DNA of 64,000 bases from Saccostrea cucullata (GCF_032062105.1 NW_026931531.1:372001-436000); one strand, 5' to 3'. Numbered from the stretch's first letter, positions 4,981 to 61,301 are shown. Notes: a model not told the origin generated them from the letters alone. Numbers and translations are program-made.

Positions 4981-6920
4981 TTTTAGTCTAAAAGACATGT
5001 TTTAATCCCATGGGAGTAATTTAGCCTCGGTGCTCAAAACCAAATTTGATAATTTTACGATAATATGATGACCGTAATGTTATCAAAAGGGCAGCTGTGA
5101 GTTCAATCTACGCGAATATAAATTGATGCCGATTAAAGCAAACATGCAGATGTCCTGACTGTTACTTTGAAGCATATTACGGCTACTTCGAATATCCAAA
5201 GGTCGGGCATTTTATCATTAATTCTTATAGTAAACGACCTTATTATAAGCTGTTTAGTCAAGGTTCTCGAAGACATCTCACTTTGGGTGTTAACACAATT
5301 ATAAATAATAATGTCCATCTTAACTCCTTTATTTTTAAATTCTCATATTAAGGGGGTTGGGGGTTGGGTTGGACATTTAATTTTTTTTGTAGTTTTTATA
5401 TATTACAAAAATCTCCTATTCCCTTGCTTCTTATCTCTCTAGCTGCACATTTCTTCTTCTTCTTTTTTTCTTTGAAATCATAAATTTGTTGATTGTACAT
5501 CAGTCAAAATATATATGAATACGCTTTTTTCGTCATTTTGTTTGGGTTGTTCAATACAATGTAGTCGGAAAATAGCTCTTCAGAGCTAATGTTCTTTGTT
5601 GATGTACCCGACTTTAAATAAATATTATCTTATCTTAATGTGTTTAAATAAAAAAATCATTCATATGTTGTTTGCCTCTTCTACACACATTAGCACATTT
5701 TTCGTTGCAGTATACATGTATATATAATATTGCAGTGGAACTCTGATAAATTTCAAAAAGCTTTAAAAGAAAAACAACGCAGCGACGGATTATATTGAGC
5801 GCAACAAAGTCACACAATATATGTACGCACACTCACAGCCAAGCCTGGGATTTACTAAGTCAATGTTTGTCAAGGCCGGGGATATCATTTCCAGTCTGGT
5901 GTCAACTAGAGCTACATCCGCCTATAGCACGACAGAAAGAGGATTATTACTTAACTATATATTTCTATTGATTTATGAGCGGTCTCTTTCTTGTTTTATG
6001 ATTCACGTGGAGGTCCTTAGAATTCAGTTCCGGCTGGAGGGAGGAGGGGCTAACGCTATAATATTTTTGATAGATAAGCACCTCTCCATAACCCCACCCC
6101 GAAATGCCAGTATTAATTATAACTTTAATTAATTATGGGAAGGAAAACAAATAATTTACTTTATATGTCCATGGTTTAGCAAACTACTACAATAGACTTC
6201 ATCCTTTCCATTTGTCAAATTATATTTCATTGATTCACACCCCCGGTCACACAAGAAACTTTTAAGTCATTCTAAACCGTCGCCAGCACTTGAAAAAATA
6301 GTAAAGTAAAAATTGGAATCTGAATTGCTTCAGTTCCGGTGTGAAATTATTCAATAAATAATTAGTTTAAAAAAAAAATCAAAAATCATATCCTATTACA
6401 ACAAGTCTTTAGAAGTATAAATATTTTTATACGCTAAGAGAAAGTTTAACCAAACACTATTGAAAACCACACGGAGTGGACGGTGATGGACCTTTCTCTA
6501 AAACTTTTCCATATCTTTTTCCCTCAAATTCTTGAATTTGGAAGTGTTTGTAAAACGTGGGGGAGGGGCAAGGAGCTTGAAAATGAAAACTTTCTTTGTA
6601 ACACGTACTGGAAAAGTGGAGGGCGAACGGGGTCTATATAAAATTTAAAATACGTGTATACATGTACAGTAGTTATGTCTTTGAGCATCTGAAAAAGACA
6701 TTAAAAATTTCAAAACATATAATATGATTACGTAGTTATTGATACATAAGATTTAATTGAGATTTAAACTACGCGAAAGTAATAAAAATATATTTTTAAG
6801 AGAGTGTACTTGTATAGATCTACGATGAATTTTGGCGCCAAACTTCACTTTCGAATCTTCTCGGGATTCTTGCCTCCAATAAACGATACTGAAAGGTTGA
6901 CTTATCACTTCCGGATCAGA

Positions 6921-29010: not shown

Positions 29011-30237
29011 TGTCCCCCGCTTTCGCGAAAGCGAGGGGACATTAAACCTCCTCCGTCACATCTGTCAGTCTGTCAGTCTGTCCGTCACATATGCCCATAA
29101 CTTTTGATTTAAAGCTATGAAATTTCACAAGTGTATTCCTTGTGACAAGACCTTTCTTTAAAACCACCAAATTTGACCTTTTGACCTTGACCTTGCTTTC
29201 ATCACTTTTACACAGAAATTTCAAACTTTTACTTTGGTCATAACTTTTGAATAAAAGGTACTAGGACTTTCATATTTTACAAATGTATTGTTTGTGACAA
29301 GACCTTTCATTGGATACCAACAACCTTGACCTTTTGACCTTGACCTTGGAGATTTGCGTACTTACATAAAAAACGTTAACCTTGACCATAAGTTTTGAAC
29401 GGTGAGGACTAAGGCTTTCGTACTTCACAATGTAATATATTATTGGATACCAAGAACTTTCACCCTTTGACCTTGACCTTGGAGTTTTAACTACTTTTTA
29501 AAAACTTTAATCTTGGTCACAACTTTTAAACAGTAGATACTGAGACTTTTATATTTCACATATGTATTCCTTGTGCAAGACATTTCATTGGATACCAACA
29601 ACCTTGACCTTTTGAACTTGACCTTGGAGATTTTAACTTTTCATAACTTTTGAACGGTGAGGGCTAGGGCTTTCGTACTTCACATATGTAATTTTTTTGA
29701 GAAGACCTTTCATTGGATACCAACAACTTTTATCCTTTGACCTTGACCTTGGAGTTTTAACTACTTTTAAAAAAAAAACCTTTAACTTTGGTCAAACTTT
29801 TGAAACTAGGACTTTTATATTTCACAAATGTATTTCCTTTCATTGGATATCAACAACTTTGACCTTTTGACCTTGACCTTAAAGATTTACGTACTTATGT
29901 AAAAACTTTAACCTTGACAACAACTTTTGAACGGTAAGGGCTAGGGCTTTCATACTTCACATATGTAATCCTTGTGAGAAAACCTTTCATCAACAACTTT
30001 GACCCTTTACTCTTGACCTTAGAGTTCACCTACTTTTAAAAAACGTTAACTTTGGCCATAATTTTTTAACGGTCAGGAGAAGGGTTTTCATCCTTCAAAA
30101 AAATCAACTTCAATGATAATTTCTATGAAATGACATATGACAAATGTTCATATTAGACACAATATGTCATAAAAAAATAACATCTCACCAACAAAGACAC
30201 CGAAAGCGGGGGACCACAATTCTTTGAATTTGCTTGT
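29011..30237 (+). mobile_element. Helentron-associated non-autonomous element (HINE-like) with internal ~160-170 bp satellite array
   Basis: Sub-terminal IR GTCCCCCGCTTT / AAAGCGGGGGAC, 5' hairpin, (GTCT/GTCC)n microsatellite, about 6 tandem TTTGACCTTGACCTT-containing units, and a 3' hairpin AATTCTTTGAATT in T-rich flanks. Confidence 0.8.
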
Positions 30238-41148: not shown

Positions 41149-42637
41149 CTACAAAAGCTGAGTTGTGACTGGTCTCCAACCAGATTTTACCTTATTTAGT
41201 TTTACCATTTGTAATGGCGTCAGTTTGAATTCCTGTAACTCTTTTACAGATAGTTCATTAATGAAGGCGCCATCCAGTTTCTCCGCTTGACAAACGTCTG
41301 CCATTTCCCAGAGTCCACATTTTCGAAGACAAGCAACTAATTCGGTTACACCAAGATCACTGAAGTTTGTTTTAGATGAAATTTGTTGGACTTCTGTTTT
41401 AATTTCTTCGAAACTTGGTGCCACTTTCCCTACTGGTCTTAACATCACAGTTCCAACAGGTTTTCCCTTTTCTGAGCTCAAAGAAATATCTCTGAAATTA
41501 CCCATGTCTACATAGTCTGGGGGATTGTTCATGTTAGTGGGTTGTTGTTCTTGTGGTTTCCATGGCCGTGGAGATGGCTTGTTTGCAATCTCGAGTTTTC
41601 GCTGCAAGTTCGTGGAGAGAAAGTCGCGGGCTTTGTTTACATGATTTATGTTGTTCATAGCAGTGACATGAGCTGGTGATTTTTTCAGAAAGGATGGCTT
41701 ATTTGCTAATGGTGGTTTTGAATTTGGTGGAAAGAACTGCTTTTCTGGTTGCTTTGGTGATGGCGTAGGGTACAGATATTCCTCCGATTCGCTCTCTTCA
41801 TCCGGATTCTCAAATAACTTGGCTTTCATCGACACGTTTTTACGTGGATTTGCGTACTTCCTGCTGTTTGTACAGAGATCGCTCAAAGACCTTCCCAGTT
41901 GACTTCCACCACATCGTTCCCCGTTCCGTTTCCTTTTTGCATGGCTTCTTGGTAGTGTGGTGATATCGGGTGGCGGCGGCTGATGTACCTCCTTTTTCAG
42001 CAGGGACAAGTCGGGGTAGTTATATTCGTGTGACAGTTCCGCCGCGCGGATTTCTTGTTCTGATGGAAGTCTTTTGGTTTTGGACCTTTTTGGGCTCCCA
42101 GCGGGGAGGTCGTGTGGGGGACGGGAATCTATATCTGAAGTCACAGGACTTAGTTTCATCAAAATGAGGACTCGTCTCACTGCATGACGAAACACTTGTA
42201 ACTGTCAAGAGGAGGGAAAAATGCATGTAAAAGCTTATTTAAACTTGTATAAAATGATTAACATAAATCAAGTTGTTATTTATATGATTACTAGTATTTG
42301 TATCATTGTTCTTAATTTTCCGAATTGATTGTGACGGTGGACACCCCATTTTATTCGATGGACACAGAGCACCGTCACGTAAGGTATTAACATTTTAAAA
42401 GTTTGTTATTTGTCGTGAACTTTATTTTATTGTGAACAGCATACAGTGAAAAAACCCTTTAGAATTTAAAAAATATATATAAATAGATAAACAAATTAAT
42501 ACATATAATAGAATTTATTTTAAAAAAAGATTTATGTTCACAATGTATACTAATTATGTGAGCTTTCTGAAAAAAATGCTGATTTGTACCTTTGAAGTCA
42601 AGGCATCACTCAGGCGATTTCTGACCGAGTCTCCCAT
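41149..42637 (-). CDS. Pro/Tyr-motif-rich adaptor with C-terminal GAREM-type SAM domain (main exon 41149-42201; N-terminal exon 42590-42637 and/or 42923-43000, uncertain)
   Basis: 348-aa ORF ending FSDLGVTELVACLRKCGLWEMADVCQAEKLDGAFINELSVKELQEFKLTPLQMVKLNKVKSGWRP, a SAM pattern with the GWRP ending seen in GAREM. Acceptor at 42201 and two in-frame phase-0 upstream donors. Confidence 0.75.
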
Positions 42638-43229
42638 ACTCCTTACCGGGACTTTGGTTGATCACAGGATTAATCTGCTCAGTGGCTCTTAAAAGAAATT
42701 ACACATACATCTATATGCATGTAAATTATTTTTTCTTTTGACAAATTAAAATTTTTAAGACCTTATAAACAGAACTGCATGATAGTTCAAATTATTTTTT
42801 TTAATAAATCGAATTAAAAAAAAGAAATTTTCAAAAATATGATTATTGTACAAAATAGCGGACGTTTCTTTAATTTTTTCCCCGTTAATTTTCTGGTTTA
42901 TTTATAGTAATTTTTAACTTACCACCTGTTCCTCCCCCTGTTCTAGTGTGGATAATCCGCCAAAGTTCAAATGGACTTCATTTTCTCCATTATTCATCAT
43001 TGTGATGAAATTGCATAAACCTGCACAGGACTTTGCTTTAAGGAGGATATTAATCCATGAACAATAAATAAAACGGAAATCGGCGCGCGGATGTTATTGT
43101 ACATTTGGACAAATGCAACACCATCTTGTGCTATATTTATATTTAAGACGACCTCAATAATCACCTTAATTAGACACATAAATAAAGGAATTTAGTAACA
43201 CTGAATTAGAAGAGACAAGAACAGCCGCC

Positions 43230-45524
43230 ATGAAGTATCTACAGATTTTCGTTGTCCTGTTAATTGTGGGATTGGGTGCCGCACGGAGAGGTAAGATAAC
43301 CCAGACAGAAATATAAAACTTACTCTCCGCTAGTCTTTCTGATGTATAAGGGTGTTTTAATGATTTTACTGGTTGTATCTTTGTTAGTTTTTCTTATTTT
43401 CTAGTTTTCAGTTTTTATATCCTTTTGATATATTTGTTTGGATTTTGAAAGTCTAAATGTTTTGAAAGTCATTCCTTGTAATACTAAATCTTTCAAATTT
43501 ATATAAATATAACAACCATATGTTAAAATTGGAAAGTTACACAAAACTGAATATTTTTGATAACGCATGTATTATATAGAACAAGCTGTATAGTATTCAA
43601 AGTCAACATTTTGACTTAAGTCTGTTCACAGTTTATGGTCTGCAGGCCTGGCTTAACACCGCTATGAAGACTTAACATGTAAGGCAGATTTTTTTTCTAT
43701 TATAGGCAGAAGGTTTCGAATATTCTGTTCTACAGAAGCAGATTGTCCCCACTTTTCCACATGTGTTAACATGGGTCTTGCGGACAAAAGCGTTTGTTTG
43801 CCAAGTATGATTGCACTCTTTTTATATGAGATAAATTAAAGTTTTATTTTACAAGCAGAATTGGTAATTATTTTGAATAAATACTGCTAGTATTTAATGC
43901 CAATATCTTTCACAATCCTTTAAAGCATTTATGAATTTATCGCTTTGTAGAAAAAATGGTGAATATAAGGATGGAAATGAAATTATCCAGGCTTCCATCT
44001 TTGGCAAGTTGTACTGAGGATAGCGACTGTGAAAATGTCGGGAAATGTGAAGAGGTGCCTAACTTTGGAGTGCGCATGTGTATGCCAGGTGCGTTGTCAG
44101 TTTAAGTTTATATGCTGTTTATACCTTAAAAAATTAATTAATTATTATAAATATAGAATAAAAAACATGGAATAAAAATGGAAAATTATAGAATACAAAT
44201 AAAAATTATACAATAAAAATGAAGAATTATTCAATATTAATGGAAAAAAATCGAATATTGCAACGGGTTAACATAGCATACCGTTCACTTTGATATATTT
44301 AAAGAGAAACAAGCATCGCCAATTCTTGTATTATGTATTGTATGATGTAGAATACAAATTCTCGTAACATGACTTTATGTGTTGTAGGTTTCGTCAGTAA
44401 GATGCTTAACAAAAAAAGTGATCAACTGGCAAAGACCTGCACCTCCGAGAACGACTGTGGCGCTTCCTCTAAATGTATAGAGTTTCCAAAATTCGAAAAA
44501 CAGATCTGTTTATTTGGTAAGTTTCCTTTCCCAGCTATAATTAAAACAAATTGAAAATGAATGAATTGATATGAATTTAAAATTAAATCAAGACGTATTT
44601 GTGAAAAGCCCCCTTTGGCAGCATGTTTTGTAGCTTGTGGCGAAGGTTAAGATTTCTGAAATGGTAGTCAAACTCCAAGGTCAAGAGATAAAAAATGCTG
44701 TTACCTATAAAAAGGATTTGTCTATCTGAACATATAAAAATACATCGAAGATGAAAACATTTATGTGGTCTTCATTTCAGAAAATAAACTTTTACACAAA
44801 ATGATGGTAAGCATCCATAGTAAGTTTGTAAAGGTGGACCAAGAACAACCAGATATCGATACAGAGGAAGACAAAGAGGACGGGAAAGATGACACCAAAG
44901 GACAAGAGGGAGAGAATGATCTGGATGATAATGACGATGATAACGATGATGGTAAGGATGATGATTTGGAGGATGCTTCATTTATCAATGATTCTCAGTT
45001 TCTTACCAAGATAGATGACAACGATGAGATATACAAAAAATTCATCAGTGCGCACAAGGCGTACCGCGGGAAGGGATCCTGGAACATGTTTTTCATGGGT
45101 GCCTTTTCAATGGCGGGAGTCGTGATCCTCATTTTATTTTCTCTATTATGGTTAGTTATTTCAAAATTACATAATTTCCTGCTATATACATATTAATGCT
45201 GTCTCTATAGAATCTGTGTCCGTTGAAATGAACATTATATATGATTTTTTTAAAAATATATAAATTTATGAATATTCATTATCGGAATTGATATTGAAAA
45301 TTTGGAATGTGAATTGCATTCAGTTTTCCAAGGTCAGTGATAATAAATTTGATGATTTTTTTTTATCCAGTTGCTTGACCGTCAAAAAGAGAATGTCAAA
45401 GAAGCACAGAGAGGAATCCGGCGAAACAGGAAAAAAGGGACTTCGCAACGTGTTCCTGACAAAAATCAGCGCTATTCCAAATCCCTACAGTAAACTCGAA
45501 GAAGAGAAGGGCGTTAAGATATGA
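43230..45524 (+). CDS. Uncharacterised type I membrane protein: signal peptide, three 4-Cys modules, Asp-rich stalk, TM helix, YSKL tail. Exons 43230-43290, 43706-43804, 43951-44088, 44388-44516, 44781-45150, 45371-45524
   Basis: MKYLQIFVVLLIVGLGAARR|G..CSTEADCPHFSTCVNMGLADKSVCLP|..CTEDSDCENVGKCEEVPNFGVRMCMP|..CTSENDCGASSKCIEFPKFEKQICLF|..DDNDDDNDDGKDDD..FFMGAFSMAGVVILILFSLL|CCLTVKKR..NPYSKLEEEKGVKI*. All boundaries are GT-AG and in phase. Confidence 0.85.
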
Positions 45525-45869
45525 TCATGTTTAGAGAGGCCATTGGATGACGAGATGAATGTTACCAAATAAATAAACTATTGCCTAGATCGGCAATTGT
45601 TGAATGTGGCGATGAACACCTGACTTGCAGTACTTTAAAAATAACGACTTTTTTTTTTCAAATACAACTGTAAAATATCATTCAATCATGGAAAGATATA
45701 AATTGCTGTGTCAATGAGGTTTTCATTTTATTTTATTTTTTAAACCACCTCATGAAATAAATTTTCAAAAAACGGAATTATTTTTACCTTTAAAAGTACT
45801 ACTTTTTATTTGAAATCATTGACAACTGTGTTTTTAATAAAATGGAAAACACAAATTTACTTACGTTTG

Positions 45870-46480
45870 TCATTTGCAAAATTACTTTCTTATAGCGAAT
45901 CTGATATACAAGTACTCTGAAGTTGATATTAAAAATGTTCGAGTTTCTGATTGACGATATCTTTGTGGTTTTTGGAAACTATATCCTCCGACAATGGGAT
46001 ATTCACAAGGGTACCAATTATTAGACTGGACCTATTTTTATTCATATGAAGAAGAATTTATCTCATACACTGTACGTGAAAAGAAGAAAACACTTTCTTC
46101 AATCTGACATTTAGATATAATTATATACTACTAAATGTCTATTTTTATAAATGTTTACATAAATGATTATCGACGGCGTGTTGTTAATCAATTTGCATAT
46201 ACTTGCGATAAGATATCCTGGTGAGCTTGAAATAACAGACAATCTAACAAACACTAAAAAAATAACTATTAAAGTCACGAAGAAAACTAGTAAATTTACT
46301 GTCCATACAATCACTACCTTAAAAGTCCATAACACAGAACAAAACAGAACAAAATAGGAGCAAAGCAAACACGGACCAAACATCAGAGGTGGGATCAGGT
46401 GCTGTGGGGGAGTGTGATACATATATGATGATAAATGGGATATGACGTTATCTTTCTGAACTTTCCTTACTTTTGCAGCA
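45870..46480. mobile_element. Highly degraded Penelope-like fragments
   Basis: TACTCTGAAGTTGATATTAAAAATG..GAGTTTCTGATTGAC is the reverse complement of 37180-37227. The region also carries the GGTGGGATCAGGTGC tail motif. Confidence 0.55.
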
Positions 46481-46659
46481 GTATATACCTTAATATTTAC
46501 ATTTCCAATGTCTTTGTCCGAGAAAAAATCACAAATTGTAAATGTACTTTATATCAAAAATGTATTAGTCGATTCCAAAAAAACCACGTGCAGGGCGGGA
46601 CAAACAACTAGACAGAAGCATGGCTTGGAGCACGTGGATTGGCGGAATCAAAGCATGTA

Positions 46660-47150
46660 TAAGGAATAACTGTCAGATTTTTCAATTTCATGACGATGAT
46701 CAATCGATTAGCTTGCGTGATAATTTAAACAATAAAATGGATTCTTTGCTTGTTATTACTGGAATTAACGGTAGCAGCTGTTGCAGAAAAAATACATAAC
46801 CCGCGTAATAACAAACAAAGAAAGACATTTTATTGTTCTTATTTATATCTTTTTAAATAATCATTTAAAAAGGATTAAAAAGTTTAATTATTGTATTAAT
46901 AATGCGAACGTCTTTATACGTTTCATTGATGGAGCAGCCACTGATCAAGAAATCTGTACAGGCAACATGCCTAATCACAGTAGTTCATGCAGTGATTAAC
47001 GCAATGGGTTTTCTTAAGAAATAAAGGAGAAAATATTCAGTGGATGTAAATATTTTATGCATAAACGCCTTCGGCGTTAATGCAAATCATCACAACAGCC
47101 AATCGATTGATCACATCATGAAATCGAAAAAAAAAGACAATTACTCCTTA
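46660..47150. mobile_element. MITE with ~65-bp TIRs (TAAGG..CCTTA); an internal fragment recurs at ~49100-49285
   Basis: TAAGGAATAACTGTC..TTTCATGACGATGATCAATCGATT / AATCGATTGATCACATCATGAAA..GACAATTACTCCTTA. Confidence 0.75.
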
Positions 47151-47243
47151 AATATCACTTGCATACCGGGTTTATATCTCTCAGATGATTCCATACATAA
47201 GATCATGCTCTACGTATGAACAATTCTAAAACGAGGTAATTGA

Positions 47244-47559
47244 TTATACCCCCGCTTGAAAAGTGGGAGGGTATACTGTAATCGGTATGTCCGTCCGTCC
47301 GTCTGTACGTCCGTCTGTCTGTTACACTTTGGGGAACCCATCTCTTATCCGCAACTCCTCTTATACCACGGAGTGAAATTTACTGAAACTTTCACAAAAA
47401 TTTTATTACATATTGCCATTGTGCACCTCCTATTTTACTTTTTGATCCGATACATATTTTGGGTTTCCCGGCCACAGCAAAACATGGACTTTTCCATTAT
47501 AATCATATGGGAGGCGGGGGTATCATTTAGTGAGCTCATTGCTCACAGTACCTCTAGTT
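47244..47559 (+). mobile_element. Short HINE-like (Helentron-type) element inserted into a Penelope-like remnant
   Basis: ATACCCCCGC / GCGGGGGTAT sub-terminal IR, (GTCC)n microsatellite, 3' hairpin GTGAGC..GCTCAC, ends CTAGTT. Confidence 0.75.
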
Positions 47560-49440
47560 GACATATAAGTTTATGAAATTAAACTATTACTGGGTACTAA
47601 AGCGCCCTTTATCGCAGACCTATTTATAAAATATTTATATGAGACAGAATTCATTAAAAAAAAAAACTTTGACATTAACACATACGACGAAGTTTTATCA
47701 ATCAACATTGATGATTTTCATTATATGTTGATTTAATATGTCCCCACGAATTCTAAGAAAAAGACATCAGTCAAATAGTCTGACACATCTGTTTCATATG
47801 TAGATATTCAATGTAGATAAAACACGCATTATAGTAAATTAACAAAACTTTATTAAAATAAATGTGCTCATTTGAGCTTTTCTATCGTCAACATCTCTCA
47901 TTTATGTAGCAAAATACCATTATCATTATCACCTCTATATAAAGTTTATGCCTCCTACATTTGTAGTTTATTCAACATTTAAGAGCGTACTCTGCCAACG
48001 AACCATTTCTAAAATGAAGCAAGCTACTGAAAAATAAGTTGGCACACATTACGAATTTTTATAAGAATACTAAATATTACTAATGCATTGTTAAAATGTT
48101 ACTTTCATACACAATTCTATATCCTATATAGCGGTTTCATGACTTTTTTTATATATTTTTTATTAAATTTTAGAAATAGGAAGTGACACGACTTTTGAAA
48201 ACATAGAAAAATGAAATTTTAATGCATGGAATTTTGTGTAAAAAATAATGAACTCTCATATGTCTACTTTTATAATTCTAATATCCTATATTTCTGTAAC
48301 TTTAGTTTCACGAATTTTTATAATATTTTATTAAATTTTAGAAAAAGGAAGAACTTGCGTTCTTTAAAATAAAATGTTTTTTCTCTCAAAAATAAGGAGT
48401 GACCTACGATCCAACAATGTCTGCTAACAAAAAATTGAAAGGTTGAATGTTGAACAAGGAAGCCGTTTCCTATGAGAAATATGTAGATAGAAGGTTTATT
48501 GGATAAATCTCGCACAAAAAGTTAACGGAATATATTTTTTCTGTACTTTCTATGCATTTATTGGAAGAGTCATTAAGAATAATTACGTAACTAAGCAATA
48601 CAGGCATTGAAGTGTGTTTACATACATAACTTCCTGGTTTTAATGAAAGGGTAAATGTACGAGCTTTCTTTACTCAAGGATTTTATTTTTGATATATGTA
48701 TTATAGTTGTTTTTTATATATTTTTTTGTTTGAGCCAGATTCCCGCTTGGCTTGTGAGGGATGGCAACACTTGCTTTCCACCTCTGATGACATTGGTCTT
48801 AAAAGAAAACAAGTTGTAAGATATTATAGATTTATTTTGGAGAAACCGCAACTCATATCAATAAAATAATTAATTTTACAAAACATTCTGAAAAAGAAAC
48901 AAATCATTAATAACATTTCATTTTTTTTCAACATATTACATTTCAAATGCGTTAGCTTTCAAGGTATATAAACATGAATATTATTAACATAAAGATGATT
49001 GAATTTACATGTACATACCTTAAAAGAAAACAAGTTGTAAGATATTATAGATTTATTTTGGAGAAACCGCAACTGAGGTTGTCAGGGCGCGCATGGCCAT
49101 TATAAACCCCAAAAGTTTAATTATTGTATGAATAATGTGAACGTCTTTATACGTTTCCTTGATGGAACAGCCACTGATCAAGAAATCTGTACAGGCGACA
49201 TGCCTAATGTAGTTCATGCAGTGATTAACGCAATGGGTTTTCTTAAGAAATAAAGGAGAAAATATTCAGTGGATGTAAATATTACTCTTTAACTGATTTA
49301 TTTTTTCCTAATTCGAAAAAATGTATTTGTATGATGTCTCCGTAGTCATTTTCGAGGCCCAGCTCCTTTTGACAGCGTAGACAGTCCTGCAACCGTATTC
49401 CCTCAAGGTCTTTTATAAAACTTTTCCTCTGAAATCTTCT

Positions 49441-49586
49441 CTAATGCTTTCGATAACCACCTCTCCAAATTATAAGCCTCTGATATCTTCTCCAATACCT
49501 CCTCCCCTGAAATCTCCTGTTAAACCTTATCCTTTGGAATCTTCTACCATACCAGTTGCTGTTCTGTTGTTGTGCCTCCTCGACTT
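49441..49586 (-). pseudogene. Orphan last exon (copy C) of the cationic-peptide gene family: (E)VEEAQQQNSNWYGRRFQRIRFNRRFQGRRYWRRYQRLIIWRGGYRKH*
   Basis: Intact acceptor, open frame and the same TAG as copies A and B. Intron homology to 55650-56720 stops at ~50670, and no signal-peptide or Cys exon was found between there and copy A. Confidence 0.65.
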
Positions 49587-51764
49587 CTACAATATTGTAA
49601 TCAGTAATAATCGGTTATTTTACAAAATGTGAAATAATAAAATTAATAAGAAAACTGTTTTAACTTTCTAATTAATATATAAAAAATTCTACCCCTCTAC
49701 TTTGCAAATACATGTATATCATTTCTTCTTCGAAACGTTCTGCTTTGATTGTAATCCTTCCTTTCAGGAAGTAATTGTATGTTGCCAAGGCAAAAAAATC
49801 AAAGTCTATGGGAAATTATTATAGACAAATTTTGGCAATTTGATCAGGAAAGTACTGTATGTATACTTTAAAAAGCGGGCCTTATATTTTAAGCGGCCAA
49901 CGATGCGCTAATTCATGATTACTGCAAATACAATTATTAATACAATATACAACGCATTAGGGTATTGCGCTAATTATCCATAAATGCGCTAACAACTCAA
50001 CACCAAGTGATCGCGCTAAATTTGAATTCGCCAATTCATGTACAAGTTTGGTATCTTTGCTAACCACCAACCTGAAAAAAAACCCAATTAAGTACATGAT
50101 CGGAATCATTGCTTAACCTCTGAAAAAATATTTCTTCGCGTGCATTATCACATATGCCGGGAATTACTATATTTTAAAAATACATAGGCAGACTTTGAAC
50201 AATCGTTACATACTTGTTTCTTAAAATTATGTGTGTTTGTCTGCCTAAAGTGATTTTGAAATTATGAAACTAACTGGTTGATGACATTCTTTGAAACAAG
50301 GTTAAAATCAAAAGTTATCTGATATAAAATTAACTGCATTTGGAGCGCAAGTTTTGAAAGTTGCATGGTGATCAAGTTGGAGATGTCCAAAGTTACAATA
50401 GCATCTGCTCACAATTTTGTGCTTATTCATTTTTATTTGAGTTAGATACGTCTACAGACTTAATTTCATGTGTTTTTTTTCAAATAATTTAATCAAATAA
50501 TAATTCAGTAAAAAATAAACTATTAGTTAAAAATATCAGAGGTCAGAACACAAAAGCTAGCAAGAGAAACTGGTAGCGATTAAAGTATGAGAGTTTAAAA
50601 GTTACTTTGGTAAAATAATTTGTAATTTGGTAAAATAAATATTTTTCGTCAAGAAAATATAAAGGTCTTTCATGAGTGTTCACTCCTCCATGGCATCTTA
50701 TCCCACCTCTTCTGTCTCAGAGGTCCGTGTTTGCTCCTGATTTGTATTGTTTAATGAACTTTTTATCTTTAATAGTGTTCGTTAGTAAATATATTACATT
50801 CTGTAAAAAGAAGATTACTATATACCCTCCCGTTTTTAAGCGGGCGTATAATGATGTCAGTAAGTCTTCAATTTACCATATGGTAGAAATGTCTGAAGTG
50901 TTGAAAAGTCGTACGTTTGGATGATATTGATTTTGAAATAAAATGACTTTGATTTTAAAAACGTTGTTCAGGTATTTTACATATTACATCAATGCAATTA
51001 TTCTAGAAATTTAAATTATCTTCAAGAAATGGAAGTATTCTCATCAAATTTTATCGTGACAAAAATGGACTCAAATTTTTGTAAAGAAGTTGACGTATTT
51101 AAATTCAGTAAATGTAGAACACCTTCTGTTGTACAATTTGTATATTCTTCCCAGCATTAACGATTTCATTCTGATGCATAGTTATGACAGTGAATGACTT
51201 TGATGAAGAAAAATCATTTGCCTACATCTTCCCAGATCTGACCAATTTGCGTTCATGGCACACCCTCCACCCGTCAGCGATACACCTCGTTACCAAGCGT
51301 CATTTAAATAGTAAAACTAATATGTAAAATCCAACCAATCTCTGAATAGAATCAAAGGAATGTTAATTGATATGAAGAAATGACAACCGAGAAAGTTTTT
51401 ATTGCAGGCTTTTACAATTTTATTTTATATCAATTTCTATTAAAACATTAAAGAAATCTCTTGCCGTGGACTTAAATTCGGCAAAACGACGATTAAAAGT
51501 TTTCATGATCATTTCTACTTTGAAATGTTGTATCCCTTTAACTCAAATCAAAAATAAAGAGAGAAAAGTAAAAAAGAGTCTATTGCATATAAACATATTT
51601 TGATATTTTAATAAAATAGACTTTGATGACGAAGTAACAAAGTAGACGTTGTTATAAGAAAGTAGTACTCGAGTGTCTGCCTCTAAACCCTCCCCTCTTG
51701 CTGAGTAACATGAAGAATACACACTAGTTGTTCTATATTTAAGCTGTACTGGTCCAAGACCAGA

Positions 51765-52290
51765 AGAGAGCTTATAAATGCGAAAGTAAGTTGTCTGTCG
51801 TCCGTCCGTCTGTCTGTCTGTAATCATTTTATTTTTCAAAATGCTACTCCTCCTACGGTTTTAGTCAGATTTTAATATAACTTGGCACACAAGTAGATTA
51901 CACTGAGATACCTAATTCTAAATATTGGTTTTGATTTCGATGCCATGATTACAGAAATTTCTTTGAAATATTTTCAAAATTCTACTCATCTCAAAGTTTT
52001 GGTCTTATATCAATATGACTTGGAACACAAGTAGACTTTACTAAGATACATAATTCTTCGTATTAATGTTGTTGCCATGGTTACTAAAAATATAAATTAT
52101 TTTGAAATATTTTCAAAATGCTATTCTTCCTATAGTTTTGTTCTGATTCAATATATCAAGAAAACAACTAAAGCAATGATCAATTTTTAATGTATTGCTG
52201 TTGCAAATTTTCAATTTGAAATGGTACTTTATTATCTCCTTAGTTATAAGAATATACCAGTAGAGCTACACCTCGTGAAACTCAGTTATA
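51765..52290 (+). mobile_element. HINE-like element, duplicated at 58107-58626 as part of a segmental duplication
   Basis: (GTCC/GTCT)n head, ~125-bp internal repeats (CTTGGCACACAAGTAGA..CACTAAGATAC), and a shared 3' end ATACCAGTAGAGCTACACCTC..GAAACTC.GTT. Confidence 0.65.
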
Positions 52291-52602
52291 ACATACAGAA
52301 TTCGATAAGGCGGGAATAGATTCTCGTTATCTTAATTAAAATAGCAAGAAACACATTATAGGTGTTTAAAATTGAAAAAAATAATTTCTCATGTAAAACA
52401 TGCTACACTTTGTATCTTTCACTCATGTCGATTCATTCGGACCGCCTTTTGCACAGTACCAAGTCTCATGATATTTTTAAAAAGTTTCCAACATATTAAC
52501 TTATCTTATGCATCCAATAAACGTGGAAGGGCGAAATGTAATGATAATTTTGTTGGGCATGTACTCCAGGGTTATTCCTATCCTAAACTCAACCCAGCGA
52601 CC

Positions 52603-54397
52603 CAAGTTCATTTATTCACTCAAACCATTTAAAGTATATGGTACATGAGGACAATGAAAAATATTTACAGCATATATACATTCTGGTCAGAGGTATAAGT
52701 ATATGATATATATAATAAGACAATGAAGTGGAGAAGAAAATGAAGAGAAAAAAAATGGAAAAAGGGAGGGAAAAAAACACGTAATAATGAAATGTGAGGA
52801 AAACAATTATGGAGGGCAGACTAAATCATATATTTTTAATATAAACGTACAGAGTTTTTTAAGTGTCATATCATCTTGTTTTGTCATCAGTTGAGAAAAT
52901 TTAAGAACATTTGGTCTAGTAAAGTAGTATTCATTAATATACTTTTTCCTTATGTTTGACAGTGCAGTACATTCAAGCATAAAATGAAATTCATCAGCAA
53001 TTTGTTTAGCATTACAAAGTGTACATAATCTTTCACTTAATGGTATTGATGCCCATCTTCCCAGCTCAACTGGTAGATGGTGATTAGTAGTACGAAATTT
53101 GGCAAGTATTTTCCTTAATTTTAATGACAGAGTACTTAAATACTTTTCACACTCAAAATTTGTTTTAAAAATTTTATACAAAGTACCTTTGGAAGAACTG
53201 TTAATATCAGAATGCCATTTTTGTATAAATTGATCTTGTAATCTTTGTTTAACAACAGTAGTAACCCAGTCTTGATTAGGATTATGATAAAACTGTTCAT
53301 TCCAGATATAAGAAAGTCCACATGATTCAAAAATACGATTAACACAGTCAATCCAAGGGTTCTTACCAATTTCAGATTGTGAGTTAGCAATTAAAAATTG
53401 ATACAATATACATGAAATTTTCTTATCTGTGCTATTCAATAATTTACACCAGTATGAGACTATTCTTGAATAAATAAGGACAGATAATGGAAAACGTCCT
53501 GTTTCACCATAAACCATATAATTCGGGGTACTACTTTTCAAATATAGAATATGTTTCAAAAATTTTAAATGAACACGTTCAATAATATCTAAGTTTTCAA
53601 AACCCCAGATTTCACAACCATAAAGTAACACTGGTAAAACCATTTTATCGAACAGATCAAGTTGACATTCTACAGGGAGGTTAAATTGTCTTATTTTTCT
53701 GATAACACCATACATAGCTATTTGGGCTTGGTCACAGAGATGTTTCTTGGCTTTTAGAAAGGAGCCAGATCTTGAAAATATGATACCAAGATATTTAAAT
53801 TCTTTGACAGTTTCTAGAATCTTGTTATTATAGTAAAAAACTCTTTTGTTTAAAGGGCCTTTAGAAAAAATTAATAGTTTGGTCTTCTCTATATTTACTT
53901 GTAATTTCCACTCTGAGCAGTAGCTTTCAAATTCATTCAAAGCATTTTGTAGATCATCAGGAGTTTCTGCTAAAATGACAGTATCATCGGCATATAAAAG
54001 TATAAGAAGTTTCAAATACACACATAAATCATTTTCTATAGAAGTCGTAAGGCTTTGTAAACCAATTATATTTCTATCAACAAGATAATTCTCTAGGTCA
54101 TTAATATACAACAGATAAGTTTTCACCTTGTCGTACTCCGACATTACAAAAGAAAAAATCGGTTGTATTGCCGTTCATCTTTATAAGTGATTTAATACCC
54201 TGATACATATTTGTAATATACGTGAAGCATTTGCCTTTAATTCCATAATTTAAAAGTTTACTCCAGAGACCGTTTCTCCAAACAGTGTCAAACGCTTGCT
54301 TGAAATCTATAAAAGCACTAAAAAGTTTTTTCTTACACTTCATCAGTGTGTTTGATAAAAAATGTAAAGTCAGAATATGGTCTAGAGTAGAATGTTC
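52603..54397 (-). mobile_element. 5'-truncated non-LTR retrotransposon (LINE, RTE-X/CR1-group-like) reverse transcriptase, one frameshift near 54110
   Basis: FIDFKQAFDTV, GVRQGENLS, LLYADD, FKYLGI and C-terminal RLCTLC..DEFHFMLEC; the 445-aa ORF is uninterrupted; AATAAA lies near the 3' end. Confidence 0.92.
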
Positions 54398-55497
54398 TCA
54401 ACTAGATTTGGAACTGAATGTTCAAATAAGCTATTCTGTAAATGTAGTAATTGGGCAGACAAGGTACAAATTAAGGACTGAGCTATTAATAAGATTCTGA
54501 ATCTCGCCAAATAGTGCATACATGTATTGTATGTAATTTATGTCGGTTCAGTGAATTTCTACGATTGTGATTAACTTAATGTCTTATTCTAACTTTATCT
54601 ACATCTCGCACACAGATATGATAAAAAAAAAATTAAGATTAGAAAATTGCAAACGTTTGTAGTTGTTAAAAAATATTTTTCAAAAGAAGAAATCATAAGT
54701 AAATTTTTTAAAGTAATTTTAAGCCCAAATTACTAAATTACTAAAATAAAATTACTATGAAGAGTTTATACTGATATATCGCATCATATAAAAATGAAAG
54801 GAATATTTGTAGTTGATAAAATGTCGTCGAAACACCTAAATATTGAATTATTGACCCGGCAAAGCTGGAGGTATGTATGTACCCGCAAGTACATATCCAA
54901 ATTTAAGTTTAAATATTTGATTGATAAATTGTTTCAACATTTTTTTTCACAAAAGAAACATTTCATTTATCTCTAATAATAAAAAAAAAACATCCATCAG
55001 TTCTTGATGTTTTATTGAGGCGTGTGATGTAAACATTTTCTTTCCTGTACAAAAGATATAATGGCATTATTGAATACATGTATACTTTCCAAACAATGAT
55101 TAGAATAAAATTATTCAACGAAAACAATGAAAAGAAAATCATGCATTTCACATAATTGATAATATTATTTCAAGTTAAAAAAAGGATTTTTCAAGTAATT
55201 GAAAATTACTTGATCCACATAACGCATTAATTTTGCCGGATGGCGTCAAGTTATCAAATGGTATTGCGATCATCGTAGTTTTGGTAAATTCAGTGCAGTA
55301 ATATTCAATGCATTGAAACGTTTAAATGTCGTTAAATACTGTAAAACTGATTTTTGATTCTTCATTCGGAAAAAAAGTTATATTTGAATGATGTCTCTGT
55401 AGTTATTTCCGAGGCCCATTTCCTTTCTACAGCGTAGACAGTGCTGCGACCAAATCCCCTCAAGGTCTTTTATAAACCCTTTCCTCTGAAATCTTCT

Positions 55498-57243
55498 CTA
55501 ATACTTTCCATGATATTTCCTCCAAATTATAAGCCTCTGATATCTTCTCCAATACCTCCTCCTCCTATGAAATCTTCTGTTAAACCGTATCCTTTGGAAT
55601 CTTCTTCCATACCAGTTGCTGTTCTGTTGTTGTGCCTCCTCAACTCCTACAGTAAAGTAATCAGTAATAATCAGTTATTTTACATGTAAAATAATGAAAT
55701 TAATAAGAACAAAACTGTTTTAACTTTTTAATCATTATAAAAAAAAATCTTTCCCTTTATTTCACAAATATATAATTTCTTCTTCGAAACGTTCTACTTT
55801 GATTGAAATCTTTCATTTCAGGAAGTAATTGTATGTTGTCAAGAAAAAAAAAATCAAAGTCTATGAATATTTATCATAGAATTTTTTTTGCATTTATGAT
55901 CATGGAAGTACTATAGGTATACTTTAAAAACTTTCTTTACATTTTAAGGGCTTTGGCGGGGACAACGATGCGCTAATTCATAAATACCGCAAAAAAATAT
56001 TGATACAATATACAGCGCATTAGGGTGTAGTGCTAATTCATGAATGCGCCTACAACTCAAAACCAAGTGTTTGCGCTAAATTTGAATTCGCCGATTTATG
56101 AACAAGTTTAGTATCTTTTCTAACCGTCAACTAAAAAAAAAAAATGTTTTAGTACATGTTCGGAATCTTCGCCTAACCTCTGAAAAAAAAAATTCTTCTC
56201 GTGTATTATCACATAACAATAAATATATAGGCAAATTTTGATCAATCGTTACATACTTGTTTCTTTAAATTGTGTGTATTTTGTCTGGCCAAAGTGATTT
56301 TGAAATTATGAAACTAATTGTTCCATAACATCTTTGAAACAGGGTTAAAGTCAAAAGTAATCTGATATCACATTTAATGTGTTGGGAGCGCCATTGTCGA
56401 ACAGTTTCATGGTGATCAAGTTTGAGATGTCCAAAGTTACATTTACATCTGCTCACAATTTTGCGCTTATTCATTATTAATGCATTGAGATAGACATGTC
56501 TATAGAGTTTCACGTGTTTTTTTTTTCATATAATTTGATTCAAATAAAAAATTCAGTTAAAAAATAAAAAATATTAATTACAACGATCAGAGGCCAGAGC
56601 GCAAAAGCTTGCAAGGGAATCGAAAAACCGGTAGCGATTAAATTATGAGAGTTTAAAAGGTACTTTGGTAAAATAATTTGTAAATTGGTAAAATAAATAT
56701 TTTTCGTCACGAAAATATAACAGCTGTTGTACAAGAGTTCATTCAGAAACGTTATATGTCGAAATTAAAATACAAAACATTGTACTTTCTATCAAAAGGC
56801 TTTGATGGATTTATAATTCAAACATGAAGTCACATGATATGAAGTGTCTAACTTGACCACCTACCCGGAATACACATGCTCTCCCCCAGGTCCGGAATCT
56901 CTTCACATATCTCCAGGTCGTCACAGTCACTGTCGAAAGAGCAGCTTTTGAGAGGCGGAGGTTGGGGTACGTCATTTTCTGCCGAATCTGAATGGTTTGT
57001 GACATATAAGTGTCGCTATTAGGTAAAACATTTGAATGCTATGTTTGAATACTTGTTACTGATAACACTAGCAAGTCCTTAGAGCATCTCTTTGTTCAGT
57101 GTAATCAAACATTATAAAGACACAGATGTAGTTATGTTAACAGATATATAACAAAAGTCTTGTATGAGACTTATTATCTTACCTTTTCCTGCCAGACCCA
57201 ACCCAACAATCACAAGGATAAGGAAAATCTGTAGATACTTCAT
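55498..57243 (-). CDS. Secreted prepropeptide, copy A (110 aa): signal peptide, anionic 4-Cys domain, Arg/aromatic cationic tail. Exons 57183-57243, 56865-56987, 55498-55646
   Basis: MKYLQIFLILVIVGLGLAGK|DSAENDVPQPPPLKSCSFDSDCDDLEICEEIPDLGESMCIP|GVEEAQQQNSNWYGRRFQRIRFNRRFHRRRRYWRRYQRLIIWRKYHGKY*. Phase-1 GT-AG introns; differences from copy B are mostly synonymous. Confidence 0.85.
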
Positions 57244-58813
57244 GGTGGTTACTTTTGTCTCATCTGATGAAAAATTACTGAATTCCTTTTTATATATTTA
57301 GGGACATGGTATTTGAGGTCATACCGACGTAAATATAGCACACAAGTTGTTTATATTATTGTCTATTGTACAACAACATCCGCTCACCAATTCGGATTTA
57401 ATTTATTGTGCATGGAGTAAAATCCTTCTAAACCAATGCCATATGCTCGTTTCTGTAATTTCCTTAACTTTGATAGATTCTAAGGAAAATAAGTTTAACT
57501 GTACTAAAGCGGATTCTGCATTGCAGAACCACGAAAGGTAAAAATGAGATCCTGAAAGTAATATAAGGTTCGTGAGTTCAAGACGTATAAGTAAATAATA
57601 CGTAGAAACTTGCAGCTTCTTATGAAATATCATGAAAAACATTTTTTTAAATATATTTTTTTTTTCTTTCCTTTTTCATTTTAGCATTTAATTTATTTTT
57701 ATAAAAAGATCCATTTATCTTCATTTTTTAAAAAAAAATATACCGGTATGATGCAAAAAGGCTCTGTTATTTAACAGATTCTAGGAGGACAGCAGCAATT
57801 GGCCCCCGAAACCACAGATCATATAGAAACTGGTTTCTAAAACCTACATGAGAGTTTTTCAATACGACAGTCAATTTAATTTTTATATCAACATTCGATT
57901 GATTGTGTTTAGAATCAAAATCTGTGATGACTTTAACTTTCAATCGTACGTTTGACTCAATGACCTTGTCAGCAAATACACATGAACAATCTGAGAATTT
58001 TCATACTAATTGTTTGGTCATTATGTACATACTGAGTTGTCGACGGGTTTTTCCAAAATTAGCAAATTTTCCGAAATTATCAAAATTATTTAAATTATCA
58101 AAAATACTAGTCCGAGACCAGAAGAGCTTATGCAAAAGTAATGGGTCCGTCGTCCGTCCGTCTTTTTGTCTGTACACATTTTTTTTTCAAAATGCTAATC
58201 CGCTTACGGTTTAGGTCTGATTTTAATATTACTTGGCACACAAGTAGACTACACTAAGATACTAATTACTGGGTTTCGATGAACGGTATTGCCACGTTTA
58301 CTAGAAATTTCTTTGAAATTTTTTCAAAATTCTACTCTTACAGTTTTGATCTTATTTCAATATCTTGCAACACAACTAAACTACACTAAGACACATAATT
58401 CTTTGTATCTGTTGCCATGGTTACTAAAAATATAAATTTCTTTGAAATATTTTCAAAATGCTATTCCTCCTACTGCTTTGGTCTGATTTCAATATATCTT
58501 GCCAAGAAAATGACTAAACCAATGATTAATTTATTGCTGTTGCAAAGTTTCAAGTTCAAATGCTACTTCATCTCTCCTTAGTTATAAGAAAATACCAGTA
58601 GAGCTACACCTCTTGAAACTCTGTTATAACATACAAAATTTGATAAGGCGGGAATACATTCTCATTATCTTAATTAAGATAACAAGAAACACATTATAGG
58701 TGTATAAAGTTGAAAAAAAGAACGACTTCATTTCTCATGTAAAACATTTCACATTTTGTATGCTGTTTAACTTTCACCTCGAGTCGATTCAATGCCCCTT
58801 TTTGCACAGTACC

Positions 58814-59395
58814 AAAGAAGAAGGTACAGTTTCAATACAAATAAAGCCCTATATTTTTCTAAAATATGAAAGTGATAGAAGAAATTAAAATTAATTCTTT
58901 TTGAATCATAGGAATCTCTGCAGTAAGAATACACAAATGGTTTTCCTCATATGACCTCCTAAATGCCAATTGTGACGTCATTAACTTGTGCATTTTCCCG
59001 TATTTTCTTAAAAAGTTGCAGAAGACCTCAATTTTCAGGGAATTTTCTTTCAAAAAACATACTCTGCCACCGTCGCCCGGAAAGATTTTGAGATAAGTGA
59101 TTTTTCATAGCAGTTCACATAATATATCCAAAAATTAAAGTGGGCGACGGTGGCAGACACTATTTTCTAAAGGAAAATTAGTAGAAAAACGAGTCATTTT
59201 GAAGCTTTTCTGCATTAAACTTAAAAATGTACCAAAGTAATGACGTCATATTTCAAGAAAGGCTCTTCTTCATGTCATATTCTTTAATGATTTATCATAT
59301 TCATCTACTCAACTATTGTTAAAGCCAATTTCATAACTTTTTAAGAACATTGAATTTTTAGGGCACAATAAAGCTCAAACCGTACCGTCTTCTTT
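58814..59395. mobile_element. MITE with AAAGAAG..CTTCTTT termini and an internal 16-bp inverted repeat, in the spacer between copies A and B
   Basis: AAAGAAGAAGGTACAGTTT / AAACCGTACCGTCTTCTTT; TCTGCCACCGTCGCCC / GGGCGACGGTGGCAGA. The element is absent from the paralogous site at ~52460. Confidence 0.8.
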
Positions 59396-59843
59396 CATGA
59401 TACTTTTAAAAAGTTTCCGACATATTAACTTATTTTATGCATAAAAAAATGATGAAGGGTATTTAATGATATTTTGTTGGGCATGTGCTAGAGGTTTATC
59501 CCTATCCTAAACTCAACCCAACCACCCACCACCCTCAACTAGATTTAAAACTGAATGCTCAAGTAAGCTTTTCTGATAAATATCTCTGCCAGTGTTTTGC
59601 ATTTGTCGTTTAAAGTTTATCTATTTATCAATGTTACGGAAATGAATGGCATTGGTTTGGAAGGATTTTACTCCATGCACAATAATTTAATTCCGAAATT
59701 GTGAGAGGATGTTGTTGTGCATTAGACAATAATATCAACAACTCGTGCTATATTTACAATCTAAATGACCTCAAAAACCTCGTCTCAAAGACATAAAAAG
59801 GGAATTCAGTAATTTTTCATTAGATGTGACAAAAGTAACCACC

Positions 59844-61301
59844 ATGAAGTATCTACAGATTTTCCTTATCCTTGTGATTGTTGGGTTGGGTATGGCAGGA
59901 AAAGGTAAGATAATAAGTCTCATACGACTTTTGTTATATATCTGTTAATATAACTACATCTGTGTCTTTATAATGTTTGAATACACTGAATAAGAGATGA
60001 TTTGCGGACTTGCTAGTATTATCAGTAACAGGTATTAAAACTTACAGCATTCAAATGTTTTAACCTAACAGTGACACTTATATTTCACAAACCATTCAGA
60101 TTCGGCAGAAAATGACGTATCCCAACCTCCGCCTCTCAAAAGCTGCTCTGACGACAGCGACTGTGACGACCTAGAGATATGTGAAGAGATTCCGGACCTG
60201 GGGGAGAGCATGTGTATCCCAGGTAGGTGGTCAAGTTAGACACTTCATATCATGTGACTTCATGTTTGAATTATAAATCCGTCAAAGCCACTTGATAGAA
60301 AGTACAATGTTTTGACATTTTAATTTCGACATAAAACTTTTCTGAATGAAGTCTCATAAAAGATTTTAAAAATTTATTTCTTGAAGAAAATATCAATTTT
60401 TAAAATCAGAGGGAAAAAAGCTCTAAATCTCTAATAATTTAATAGCTACCGGTTTTAAAATCCTCTTGCAAACTTTTGCACGCTGACCTTCTAAAACTAG
60501 TAGTTTAAATGTTAATTGATTTTTTCAATTTTGATTGTATTATTTTAAAAAAACCCACATGAAACTCTATAACACGTGTCTACTCGATCAGTTAAATGAA
60601 TTAGCGCAAAAATGTGAGTAGATATAATTGTAACTTTGGAGAATTCCATATTTGAGCTAAATGTACTTATCACCTTAAAACTGTCCAATATGGGCACTCT
60701 AAACACATTTAAGTGATATTAGATAACTTTACACTTAGTTTCATCTTTTCAAAACCACTTTAGACAGACAATATATACACACAACACGGTCATGCACGCC
60801 AAGAAATATTTTCAAGAGGTTAAGCGATGATTCCGATCATGTACTAAATCAATTTTTTTTAGGTTGACGGCTAGCAATCAAGTGTAAAATAGGTCCCTGA
60901 TCTGTGATTCCCCATCAAAAATGCTCAAATTTTCAAACATACATTTTTCTTTAACAAATCGTCGAATCCTTTGAATTTGAATTTGCTGTCTTTGCAATCT
61001 ATAATCACTTGCTGAAATGAAGGATTACATGTTACAATCAAAGCAGAATATTCGAAAAGAAGTGGAATAACTGTAAAATAGAGGGAGATAATTTTTTATA
61101 ATAATTTTAACAGTTCTATTCTTATTAAGACTGTACATGTAAATATTTACTGTAGGAGTCGAGGAGGCACAACAACAGAACAGCAACTGGTATGGAAGAA
61201 GATTCCAAAGGATAAGGTTTAACAGAAGATTTCAGAGGAGGAGGTATTGGAGAAGATATCAGAGGCTTATAATTTGGAGAAAATATCATGGAAAGTATTA
61301 G
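59844..61301 (+). CDS. Secreted prepropeptide, copy B (109 aa): signal peptide, anionic 4-Cys domain, Arg/aromatic cationic tail. Exons 59844-59904, 60100-60222, 61156-61301
   Basis: MKYLQIFLILVIVGLGMAGK|DSAENDVSQPPPLKSCSDDSDCDDLEICEEIPDLGESMCIP|GVEEAQQQNSNWYGRRFQRIRFNRRFQRRRYWRRYQRLIIWRKYHGKY*. Good Kozak context ACCACCATGA; phase-1 GT-AG introns. Confidence 0.85.

Follow-up and report, generated by a model that had tools for sequence, protein, structure and literature searches.

As Chen, DeVries and Cheng reportedly described in 1997, the notothenioid antifreeze glycoprotein gene derives from trypsinogen. It is said to keep the 5' end of its parent (regulatory region, signal exon, and intron), while its functional coding part stems from the amplification of a short repeat, and the parent gene persists. 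Cathelicidin precursors consist of a signal peptide, a conserved four-Cys pro-domain closed by two disulfides, and, from the last exon, a strongly cationic peptide. For bivalve big defensin/beta-defensin genes (PMC7203481) and mytilins (PMC7168163), exon shuffling figures among several hypotheses; for the big defensins of a clam and of the zebra mussel, the authors state that it is ruled out. The locus described here lies in a 64,000-nucleotide stretch of the hooded oyster Saccostrea cucullata (GCF_032062105.1 NW_026931531.1:372001-436000), referred to below as the window. It harbors a membrane-protein gene, gene A (43230-45524, plus strand), and a small group of peptide genes, the P genes: P1 (57243-55498, minus strand) and P2 (59844-61301, plus strand), arranged head to head, and a third copy, P0, truncated at its 5' side (49327-50660, minus strand). 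The P genes probably arose in the Saccostrea lineage through a partial duplication of gene A at the DNA level, supplemented by a new 3' exon. This gave a precursor laid out like that of cathelicidins or defensins, and local duplication then produced P1, P2, and P0.

P1 and P2 are three-exon genes, each encoding a precursor of ~109 aa. This precursor comprises a signal peptide, a 40-aa acidic four-Cys piece, and a 47-48-aa tail rich in Arg, Trp, Tyr, and Phe. In P1, a promoter and 5' untranslated region (UTR) block (57244-57462), within which an RNA contig begins at 57288, precedes the 61-nt signal-peptide exon 1 (57183-57243). The anionic four-Cys exon 2 (56865-56987, 123 nt, phase 1-1, net charge -10) and exon 3, encoding the cationic Arg/aromatic tail and the stop (55498-55646, net charge +14), follow on the same minus strand. 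P2 displays the same order on the plus strand: promoter and 5' UTR block (59634-59843), signal-peptide exon 1 (59844-59904, 61 nt), anionic four-Cys exon 2 (60100-60222, 123 nt, phase 1-1, net charge -11), and exon 3 with the cationic tail and the stop (61156-61301, net charge +13). Of P0, only a portion of intron 2 and the cationic exon, which is intact (coding sequence 49441-49586), remain; exons 1 and 2 are absent from this copy. The succession of signal peptide, four-Cys pro-domain, and cationic last exon is that of cathelicidins, a likeness that is architectural only. No sequence or Pfam relation links the two, the P exons matching none of the cathelicidin families, which leaves them outside the cathelin-like pro-domains. 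Furthermore, the pro-domain of the P precursors has 40 aa against ~100 aa in cathelicidins, and it comes from a receptor module.

Gene A is S. cucullata LOC134232909, for which NCBI annotates two isoforms, X1 and X2. Its six-exon model is exactly that of isoform X1 (XP_062570887.1, 316 aa), and isoform X2 (283 aa) is identical to the product of exons 1, 3, 4, 5, and 6. A promoter and 5' UTR block (43007-43229) leads to exon 1 (43230-43290, in agreement with XP_062570887.1), a 61-nt signal-peptide exon ending in phase 1 at a GTAAGATAA donor. Three C-x5/6-C-x5-C-x8-12-C modules follow, each carried by one phase 1-1 exon: module 1 (exon 2, 43706-43804, 99 nt), skipped in frame by isoform X2, module 2 (exon 3, 43951-44088, 138 nt), read here as the parent of the peptide Cys exon, and module 3 (exon 4, 44388-44516, 129 nt). 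Exon 5 (44781-45150) encodes an acidic stalk (net charge -17) and a transmembrane helix, and exon 6 (45371-45524) a cytoplasmic tail with a conserved NPYSKL, followed by the stop. All these elements lie on the plus strand, and every intron is of the GT..AG type. Judged from its sequence, gene A encodes a type I membrane protein conserved in oysters, with a signal peptide, three four-Cys modules, a charged stalk, a transmembrane helix, and a short tail.

Gene A and the P genes share a proximal promoter of ~220 bp together with the signal exon. By blastn, positions 43007-43299 of gene A match 57462-57174 of P1 (minus strand) at 71.5% over 298 nt, and positions 43044-43299 match 59662-59913 of P2 at 73.2% over 257 nt, both with an E value of 1.35e-33. 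The promoter motifs that a first-pass annotation, made by reading the DNA without database searches, had pointed out as common to these genes fall in invariant alignment columns of gene A, P1, and P2: GGATGTT.TTGT, GTGCTATATTTA, GACCTCAA, and GGAATT.AGTAA. The signal exon is, as that annotation also stated, 61 nt long in all three genes. It encodes an MK(Y/H)LQIF signal and ends in phase 1, as in the orthologues of gene A, and GGTAAGATAA follows it directly without any change between the three genes. Its first 21 nt occur exactly three times, against 0.01 occurrence expected by chance. The promoter block of gene A is kept in Saccostrea echinata and Ostrea edulis, as seen in alignments. Its parts CCATGCACAA and GAGCGGATGTTGTTG and a TATTT box (43030-43229) persist as far as O. 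edulis (locus positions 9790-10000). Such conservation suggests a regulatory module under strong constraint, which the peptide genes would have inherited.

The second shared block is the Cys exon. The module 2 exon aligns with that of P2 (44006-44099 versus 60140-60233, 73.4% over 94 nt, E 1e-9), and the homology spans the entire exon, including an SQ.P.LK.C linker. At the protein level, the P Cys exon is nearest to module 2 (46-49% identity, E 2e-9), modules 1 and 3 reaching only 31-36%, which bears out the earlier choice of module 2 as its closest relative. The three shared parts listed in the first-pass annotation are all confirmed at the positions it gave. The introns of gene A and of the P genes show no alignable similarity. 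Searches of the whole 1.17-Gb genome find the promoter/exon 1 block, the Cys exon, and the cationic exon at this locus only, and the stalk/transmembrane and tail exons of gene A as single copies. The cationic exon bears no similarity to the latter, in agreement with the earlier claim that the stalk, the transmembrane helix, and the tail are replaced by an unrelated exon. With a single module each, and devoid of the stalk, the transmembrane helix, and the NPYSKL tail, P1 and P2 are thus not full members of the oyster three-module membrane family. They have the signal exon and one module in common with LOC134232909-type genes; modules 1 and 3 are missing along with the 3' part, and the cationic exon stands instead.

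The retention of intron positions, phases, and donor sequence argues for a duplication at the DNA level and not for retroposition. The 5' part of gene A, made up of ~220 bp of promoter, the signal exon and its donor, and the exon of module 2, would have been copied beside its parent. Loss of module 1 from the copy would have created the join of exon 1 to module 2 that isoform X2 makes by exon skipping. The copy would then have been spliced in frame to a new phase-1 terminal exon, an event made possible by the phase 1-1 structure of every Cys exon (99, 138, and 129 nt in gene A, 123 nt in P). The copied module would next have turned strongly acidic opposite the cationic tail, before the new gene duplicated locally into P1, P2, and the truncated P0. 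The idea that a receptor-like gene was partly duplicated into secreted-peptide genes, put forward in the first-pass annotation, is supported by the shared promoter, signal, and Cys exons. The term "exon shuffling" used there is loose: a gene was partly duplicated as DNA with its intron positions kept, and a 3' exon was recruited afterwards.

As for the antifreeze glycoprotein and trypsinogen pair, the P genes keep the promoter and signal exon of their parent, along with the positions and phases of its introns. The parent, found in three genera, is older and more widespread than P, the absence of P being scoped to the orthologous loci. The P genes differ, however, in also keeping a parental domain exon (module 2), seemingly reused as an acidic pro-piece, and in a 27-bp repeat with only ~2.6 recognisable copies. 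Their parent is a membrane protein instead of a protease, and nothing of its 3' end is retained. Bivalve antimicrobial genes (PMC7203481, PMC7168163) likewise combine a Cys-rich module with unrelated flanks through phase-compatible introns. In contrast with these cases, the donor gene of the P genes lies ~10-14 kb away, and homology is still readable in the promoter, the donor site, and the exons.

Transcripts of the P genes were sought in four runs mapped over 55450-61400. One RNA contig joins exon 1 of P1 to exon 2 (57183/56987, GT..AG, minus strand), and a contig from a bona fide RNA library joins exon 2 of P2 to exon 3 (60222/61156, GT..AG). Three raw oligo-dT reads also cross an exon 2-exon 3 junction. 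One odd joint links the end of P1 exon 2 to P2 exon 3, which lie on opposite strands. It is read as P1 exon 2-exon 3 reads placed on the near-identical P2 copy.

The first-pass annotation had itself raised the alternative that all exons belong to one longer, alternatively spliced gene. In keeping with such a gene, the phases of the exons are compatible and gene A shares its strand with P2, yet P1 and P0 lie on the opposite strand, and each unit has its own promoter block and its own ATG exon. Moreover, both annotated isoforms of gene A end in its own tail exon, exon 6, and the junctions detected at the P genes, following the exon 1-exon 2-exon 3 order, link P-gene exons only. A single long gene is therefore extremely improbable, and this explanation is close to refuted.

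P1 and P2 are 98.4%, 94.3%, and 97.9% identical in their exons, 92.7% and 80.9% in their introns, and ~88% in their flanks. The ratio of nonsynonymous to synonymous substitution rates (dN/dS) of exon 2 between them is 0.17, and that of the corresponding proportions of differences (pN/pS) for exon 3 is 0.07-0.10 among P0, P1, and P2. This excess of exon identity over introns and flanks, with low dN/dS and pN/pS, shows that the P reading frames are under purifying selection. These data bear on another explanation, in which the P copies are decaying partial duplicates, that is, pseudogenes or sources of non-coding transcripts, with the cationic "exon" a functionless, repeat-derived open reading frame (ORF). 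Such decay would fit the absence of the P genes from the protein collection, the clear truncation of P0, and the low-complexity, repeat-derived nature of the tail. It would also fit the low RNA depth at the P genes in the four runs, which counts against functional genes. Nevertheless, the exons of P0, P1, and P2 are far better conserved than the introns and flanks (pN/pS 0.07-0.2 overall), splice sites and reading frames are all intact, and correctly spliced transcripts exist. The charge of the pro-domain has, in addition, shifted from -1 to -11 opposite a +13 tail. Decay is thus considered unlikely.

Relatives of gene A were searched for by a full HMMER scan with the stalk/transmembrane exon, followed by a word search, and the membrane form was found in oysters only. 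Its orthologues are LOC111118080 of Crassostrea virginica (381 aa), LOC125668883 of O. edulis (319 aa), LOC133199323 of S. echinata (a partial gene model, exon 1 and module 1 being found upstream of it at the locus), and a Logan transcript from run SRR6058613 (335 aa). All possess the MK(Y/H)LQIF signal, three modules, a charged stalk, a transmembrane helix, and the NPYSKL tail, and the three-module membrane form hence spans three genera, Ostrea, Crassostrea, and Saccostrea, the last with two species. The stalk exon is hypervariable across oysters, the modules, transmembrane helix, and tail being conserved; in C. virginica LOC111118080, residues ~175-285 form a long K/E-rich, coiled-coil-like repeat in place of the acidic stalk. 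Apart from the exons of the orthologue itself, the 10 kb on either side at the S. echinata and O. edulis loci contain no exon of the signal, Cys, or cationic type. The protein collection contains neither a protein of 37-117 aa sharing words with the signal and module 2 nor any relative of the cationic exon. As no short secreted relative is found there, P1 and P2 themselves are missing from this collection.

Comparison of sequences also bears on the direction of derivation, which the first-pass annotation had left unproven while proposing two checks, a phylogeny of the Cys modules and a survey of the syntenic locus. In the module trees, module 1 and module 3 form clades of their own (support 97/99 and 84/92), and P1 and P2 group with the Saccostrea module 2 (95/96 with a 29-column core, 84/92 with the whole exon). 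The second check goes the same way, with the membrane form at the S. echinata and O. edulis loci and no P exon within 10 kb of it. In the promoter and exon 1, the gene A copies of S. cucullata and S. echinata are 85% identical. Gene A and P reach 70-76%, and comparison of any of these with O. edulis gives 57-60%. The synonymous differences of the module 2 exon follow the same order: 0.41 for the Saccostrea gene A pair, 0.56-0.70 for gene A versus P, and 0.76-0.82 versus O. edulis. P is thus nearer to the Saccostrea gene A than the Ostrea gene A is, which disfavours a P older than the oyster radiation.

The reverse derivation would make the short secreted gene ancestral, the membrane gene being built from it by module duplication and the gain of stalk, transmembrane helix, and tail. 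It profits from the fact that short-module trees are unrooted and cannot fix the root, and from tests that leave the placement of P open. It conflicts with a full three-module membrane architecture common to three oyster genera, with the closeness of P to the Saccostrea gene A at the promoter, exon 1, and synonymous sites, and with the lack of P-type exons near the orthologues and in the protein collection. Already disfavoured by these data, it is very unlikely. That the membrane gene is the parent, and that its partial duplication took place in the Saccostrea lineage once this had diverged from Ostrea, appears largely settled by the sequence comparisons.

Several points weigh against this history. 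The module alignments are very short (29-45 columns), and a grouping of P with either of the other modules is not rejected by approximately unbiased (AU) tests (p 0.16-0.44 for module 1, 0.07-0.14 for module 3), so that the module tree alone is suggestive, not decisive. The evidence for lineage restriction and timing consists of two orthologous loci of 20 kb each, distances, and protein collections, from which small genes are often missing. The P searches were run exon by exon, and a 109-aa protein without shared signal words would escape them. In the further 53 kb downstream of gene A, comparison with S. echinata and O. edulis yields matches to multi-copy repeats only and no collinear anchors, which limits the syntenic absence of the P cluster to 10 kb. 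The distances, moreover, put the split between gene A and P before that between S. cucullata and S. echinata, yet S. echinata has no P exon within those 10 kb. Either P lies further from gene A in this species, or it was lost, or P simply evolved faster. Finally, old gene conversion between the neighbouring genes could have distorted the dating.

A stronger form of this last point holds that P is older than the oyster radiation and looks young through conversion of its promoter, exon 1, and Cys exon by the adjacent gene A. The patchiness of the similarity, with two blocks and unalignable introns, and the adjacency of the genes would suit such a process. Against it, gene A and P are only 70-76% identical, which excludes recent conversion, and no P exons were found at the O. 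edulis locus. By eye, P also appears to share a few promoter positions with O. edulis that are altered in both Saccostrea gene A copies, which would argue against an overwriting of P by gene A. An ancient P rejuvenated by conversion is accordingly quite unlikely.

No parent sequence for the cationic exon is found in the 1.17-Gb genome or in the orthologous loci. Exon 3 of P2 contains a tandem repeat (61197-61265) with a period of 27 bp, or nine codons, present in 2.6 copies with 78% matches according to Tandem Repeats Finder, and these 27-bp repeats encode many Arg and aromatic residues. Read in its other frames, the exon is E/D-rich, which prompted the idea of a frameshifted stalk. When the exon 3 regions of P0, P1, and P2 were locally aligned with exon 5, exon 6, and the downstream sequence of gene A from S. 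cucullata, S. echinata, and O. edulis, z-scores of -1.8 to +1.3 relative to dinucleotide shuffles were obtained, and this origin was rejected.

The module facing the tail also differs from its parent, its net charge being -1 in gene A and -11 in P, opposite a tail of +13. An anionic, disulfide-braced pro-domain of this kind may mask a cationic host-defence peptide until processing, and charge masking by the pro-piece is, by analogy, likely to be the logic of both P and cathelicidin precursors. The P products would accordingly be expected to be secreted and processed, and to display an antimicrobial or effector activity. A Gly-Arg-Arg follows the NSNWY stretch, many other RR sites exist, and no elastase/furin-type processing site is established.

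In a Pfam scan, no exon of the window matches any family above its cut-off, and only weak matches to WAP, Lustrin_cystein, and Dumpy DPY are returned. WAP domains (PF00095) require eight Cys against four per module here, and module 2 scores 13.6 bits for a cut-off of 20.8; the Logan orthologue alone reaches 28.7 bits, summed over two partial matches. For Lustrin (PF14625), the best score is 20.1 bits (module 3) for a cut-off of 27. An AlphaFold model of the module, based on 16 aligned modules, displays a disulfide-braced β-hairpin with a predicted local distance difference test (pLDDT) score of 77.5. Foldseek against the PDB retrieves Dickkopf and knottin fragments at template modelling (TM) values of 0.5-0.64, all non-significant (E ≥ 0.9). 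WAP, Lustrin Cys-rich, knottin, and Dickkopf-colipase domains are, as the gene A modules, small disulfide-rich β-hairpin modules, a resemblance from which no membership is claimed, the gene A modules having only four Cys and all window modules falling below the Pfam cut-offs. In the literature, no paper mentions LOC134232909, LOC111118080, LOC125668883, or LOC133199323.

In RNA-like runs of seven studies, 0.20-0.27 of the words sampled from the 2.6-kb stretch of gene A are present, a share roughly equal, by our own estimate, to the exonic fraction of this stretch. The cytoplasmic tail of gene A (45371-45524) carries the motif FLTKI...NPYSKL(E/H)(N/E)EK, kept in all oyster orthologues. The YSKL within it matches a YxxPhi sorting signal, a hint that the protein may be an endocytic or sorting receptor. 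Directly upstream of gene A, on the minus strand, lies an intronless 348-aa ORF (41149-42195) without Pfam match. It holds the same position in S. echinata (86% nucleotide identity) and O. edulis (70%), where its counterpart is annotated as a 375-aa gene, so that the synteny upstream of gene A is conserved.

Other features of the window concern the P copies and repeats. The P0 cationic exon (49441-49586, minus strand) is 97.6% identical to that of P2 over 41 codons, with a pN/pS of ~0.1 and flanks at ~77%. It lies on the strand of P1, ~6 kb downstream of that gene, and could serve as an alternative P1 terminal exon, giving a variant tail ending in ...WRGGYRKH. Between the P1 and P2 promoters, the segment 58037-59429 has a very high summed depth in the three contig runs and a raised read depth in X19; variant joints and loose ends are numerous. 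This pattern is typical of a multi-copy transposable element. A tandem repeat element is found at 29060-30100 and 4330-4660, and also twice near the S. echinata orthologue (locus positions 6184-6511 and 13674-14428); it resembles a satellite or repeat family spread throughout the genus.

Many invertebrate antimicrobial or effector peptide families are without a traceable origin. Here, a single 20-kb stretch still shows the parent, the retained promoter and exons with their phase logic, and the new exon, and the parent can be traced over three genera. The locus is a well-delimited case of new-gene origin. Such events are known as a kind; the present one, and its peptide family, seem to be new. 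It adds at least two expressed genes that the searched protein collection lacks, and with them a candidate new peptide family, and it gives an uncharacterised conserved oyster membrane protein a first functional handle. A bolder picture can be offered tentatively, as a possibility that we hold to be rather doubtful. A Saccostrea-specific host-defence peptide family would have been born from a conserved oyster membrane receptor, keeping its promoter, turning a ligand-binding module into an acidic pro-piece or targeting domain, and obtaining its killing part as a de novo exon from a 27-bp minisatellite. If so, receptor and peptide genes would be co-regulated through the retained promoter, and the origin of an antimicrobial peptide gene would be fully traceable, with its parent, intermediates (isoform X2 and the truncated P0), and products within 20 kb. 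Should the tail be antimicrobial, the locus would provide a compact model of a receptor gene spawning a secreted effector under the same regulation.

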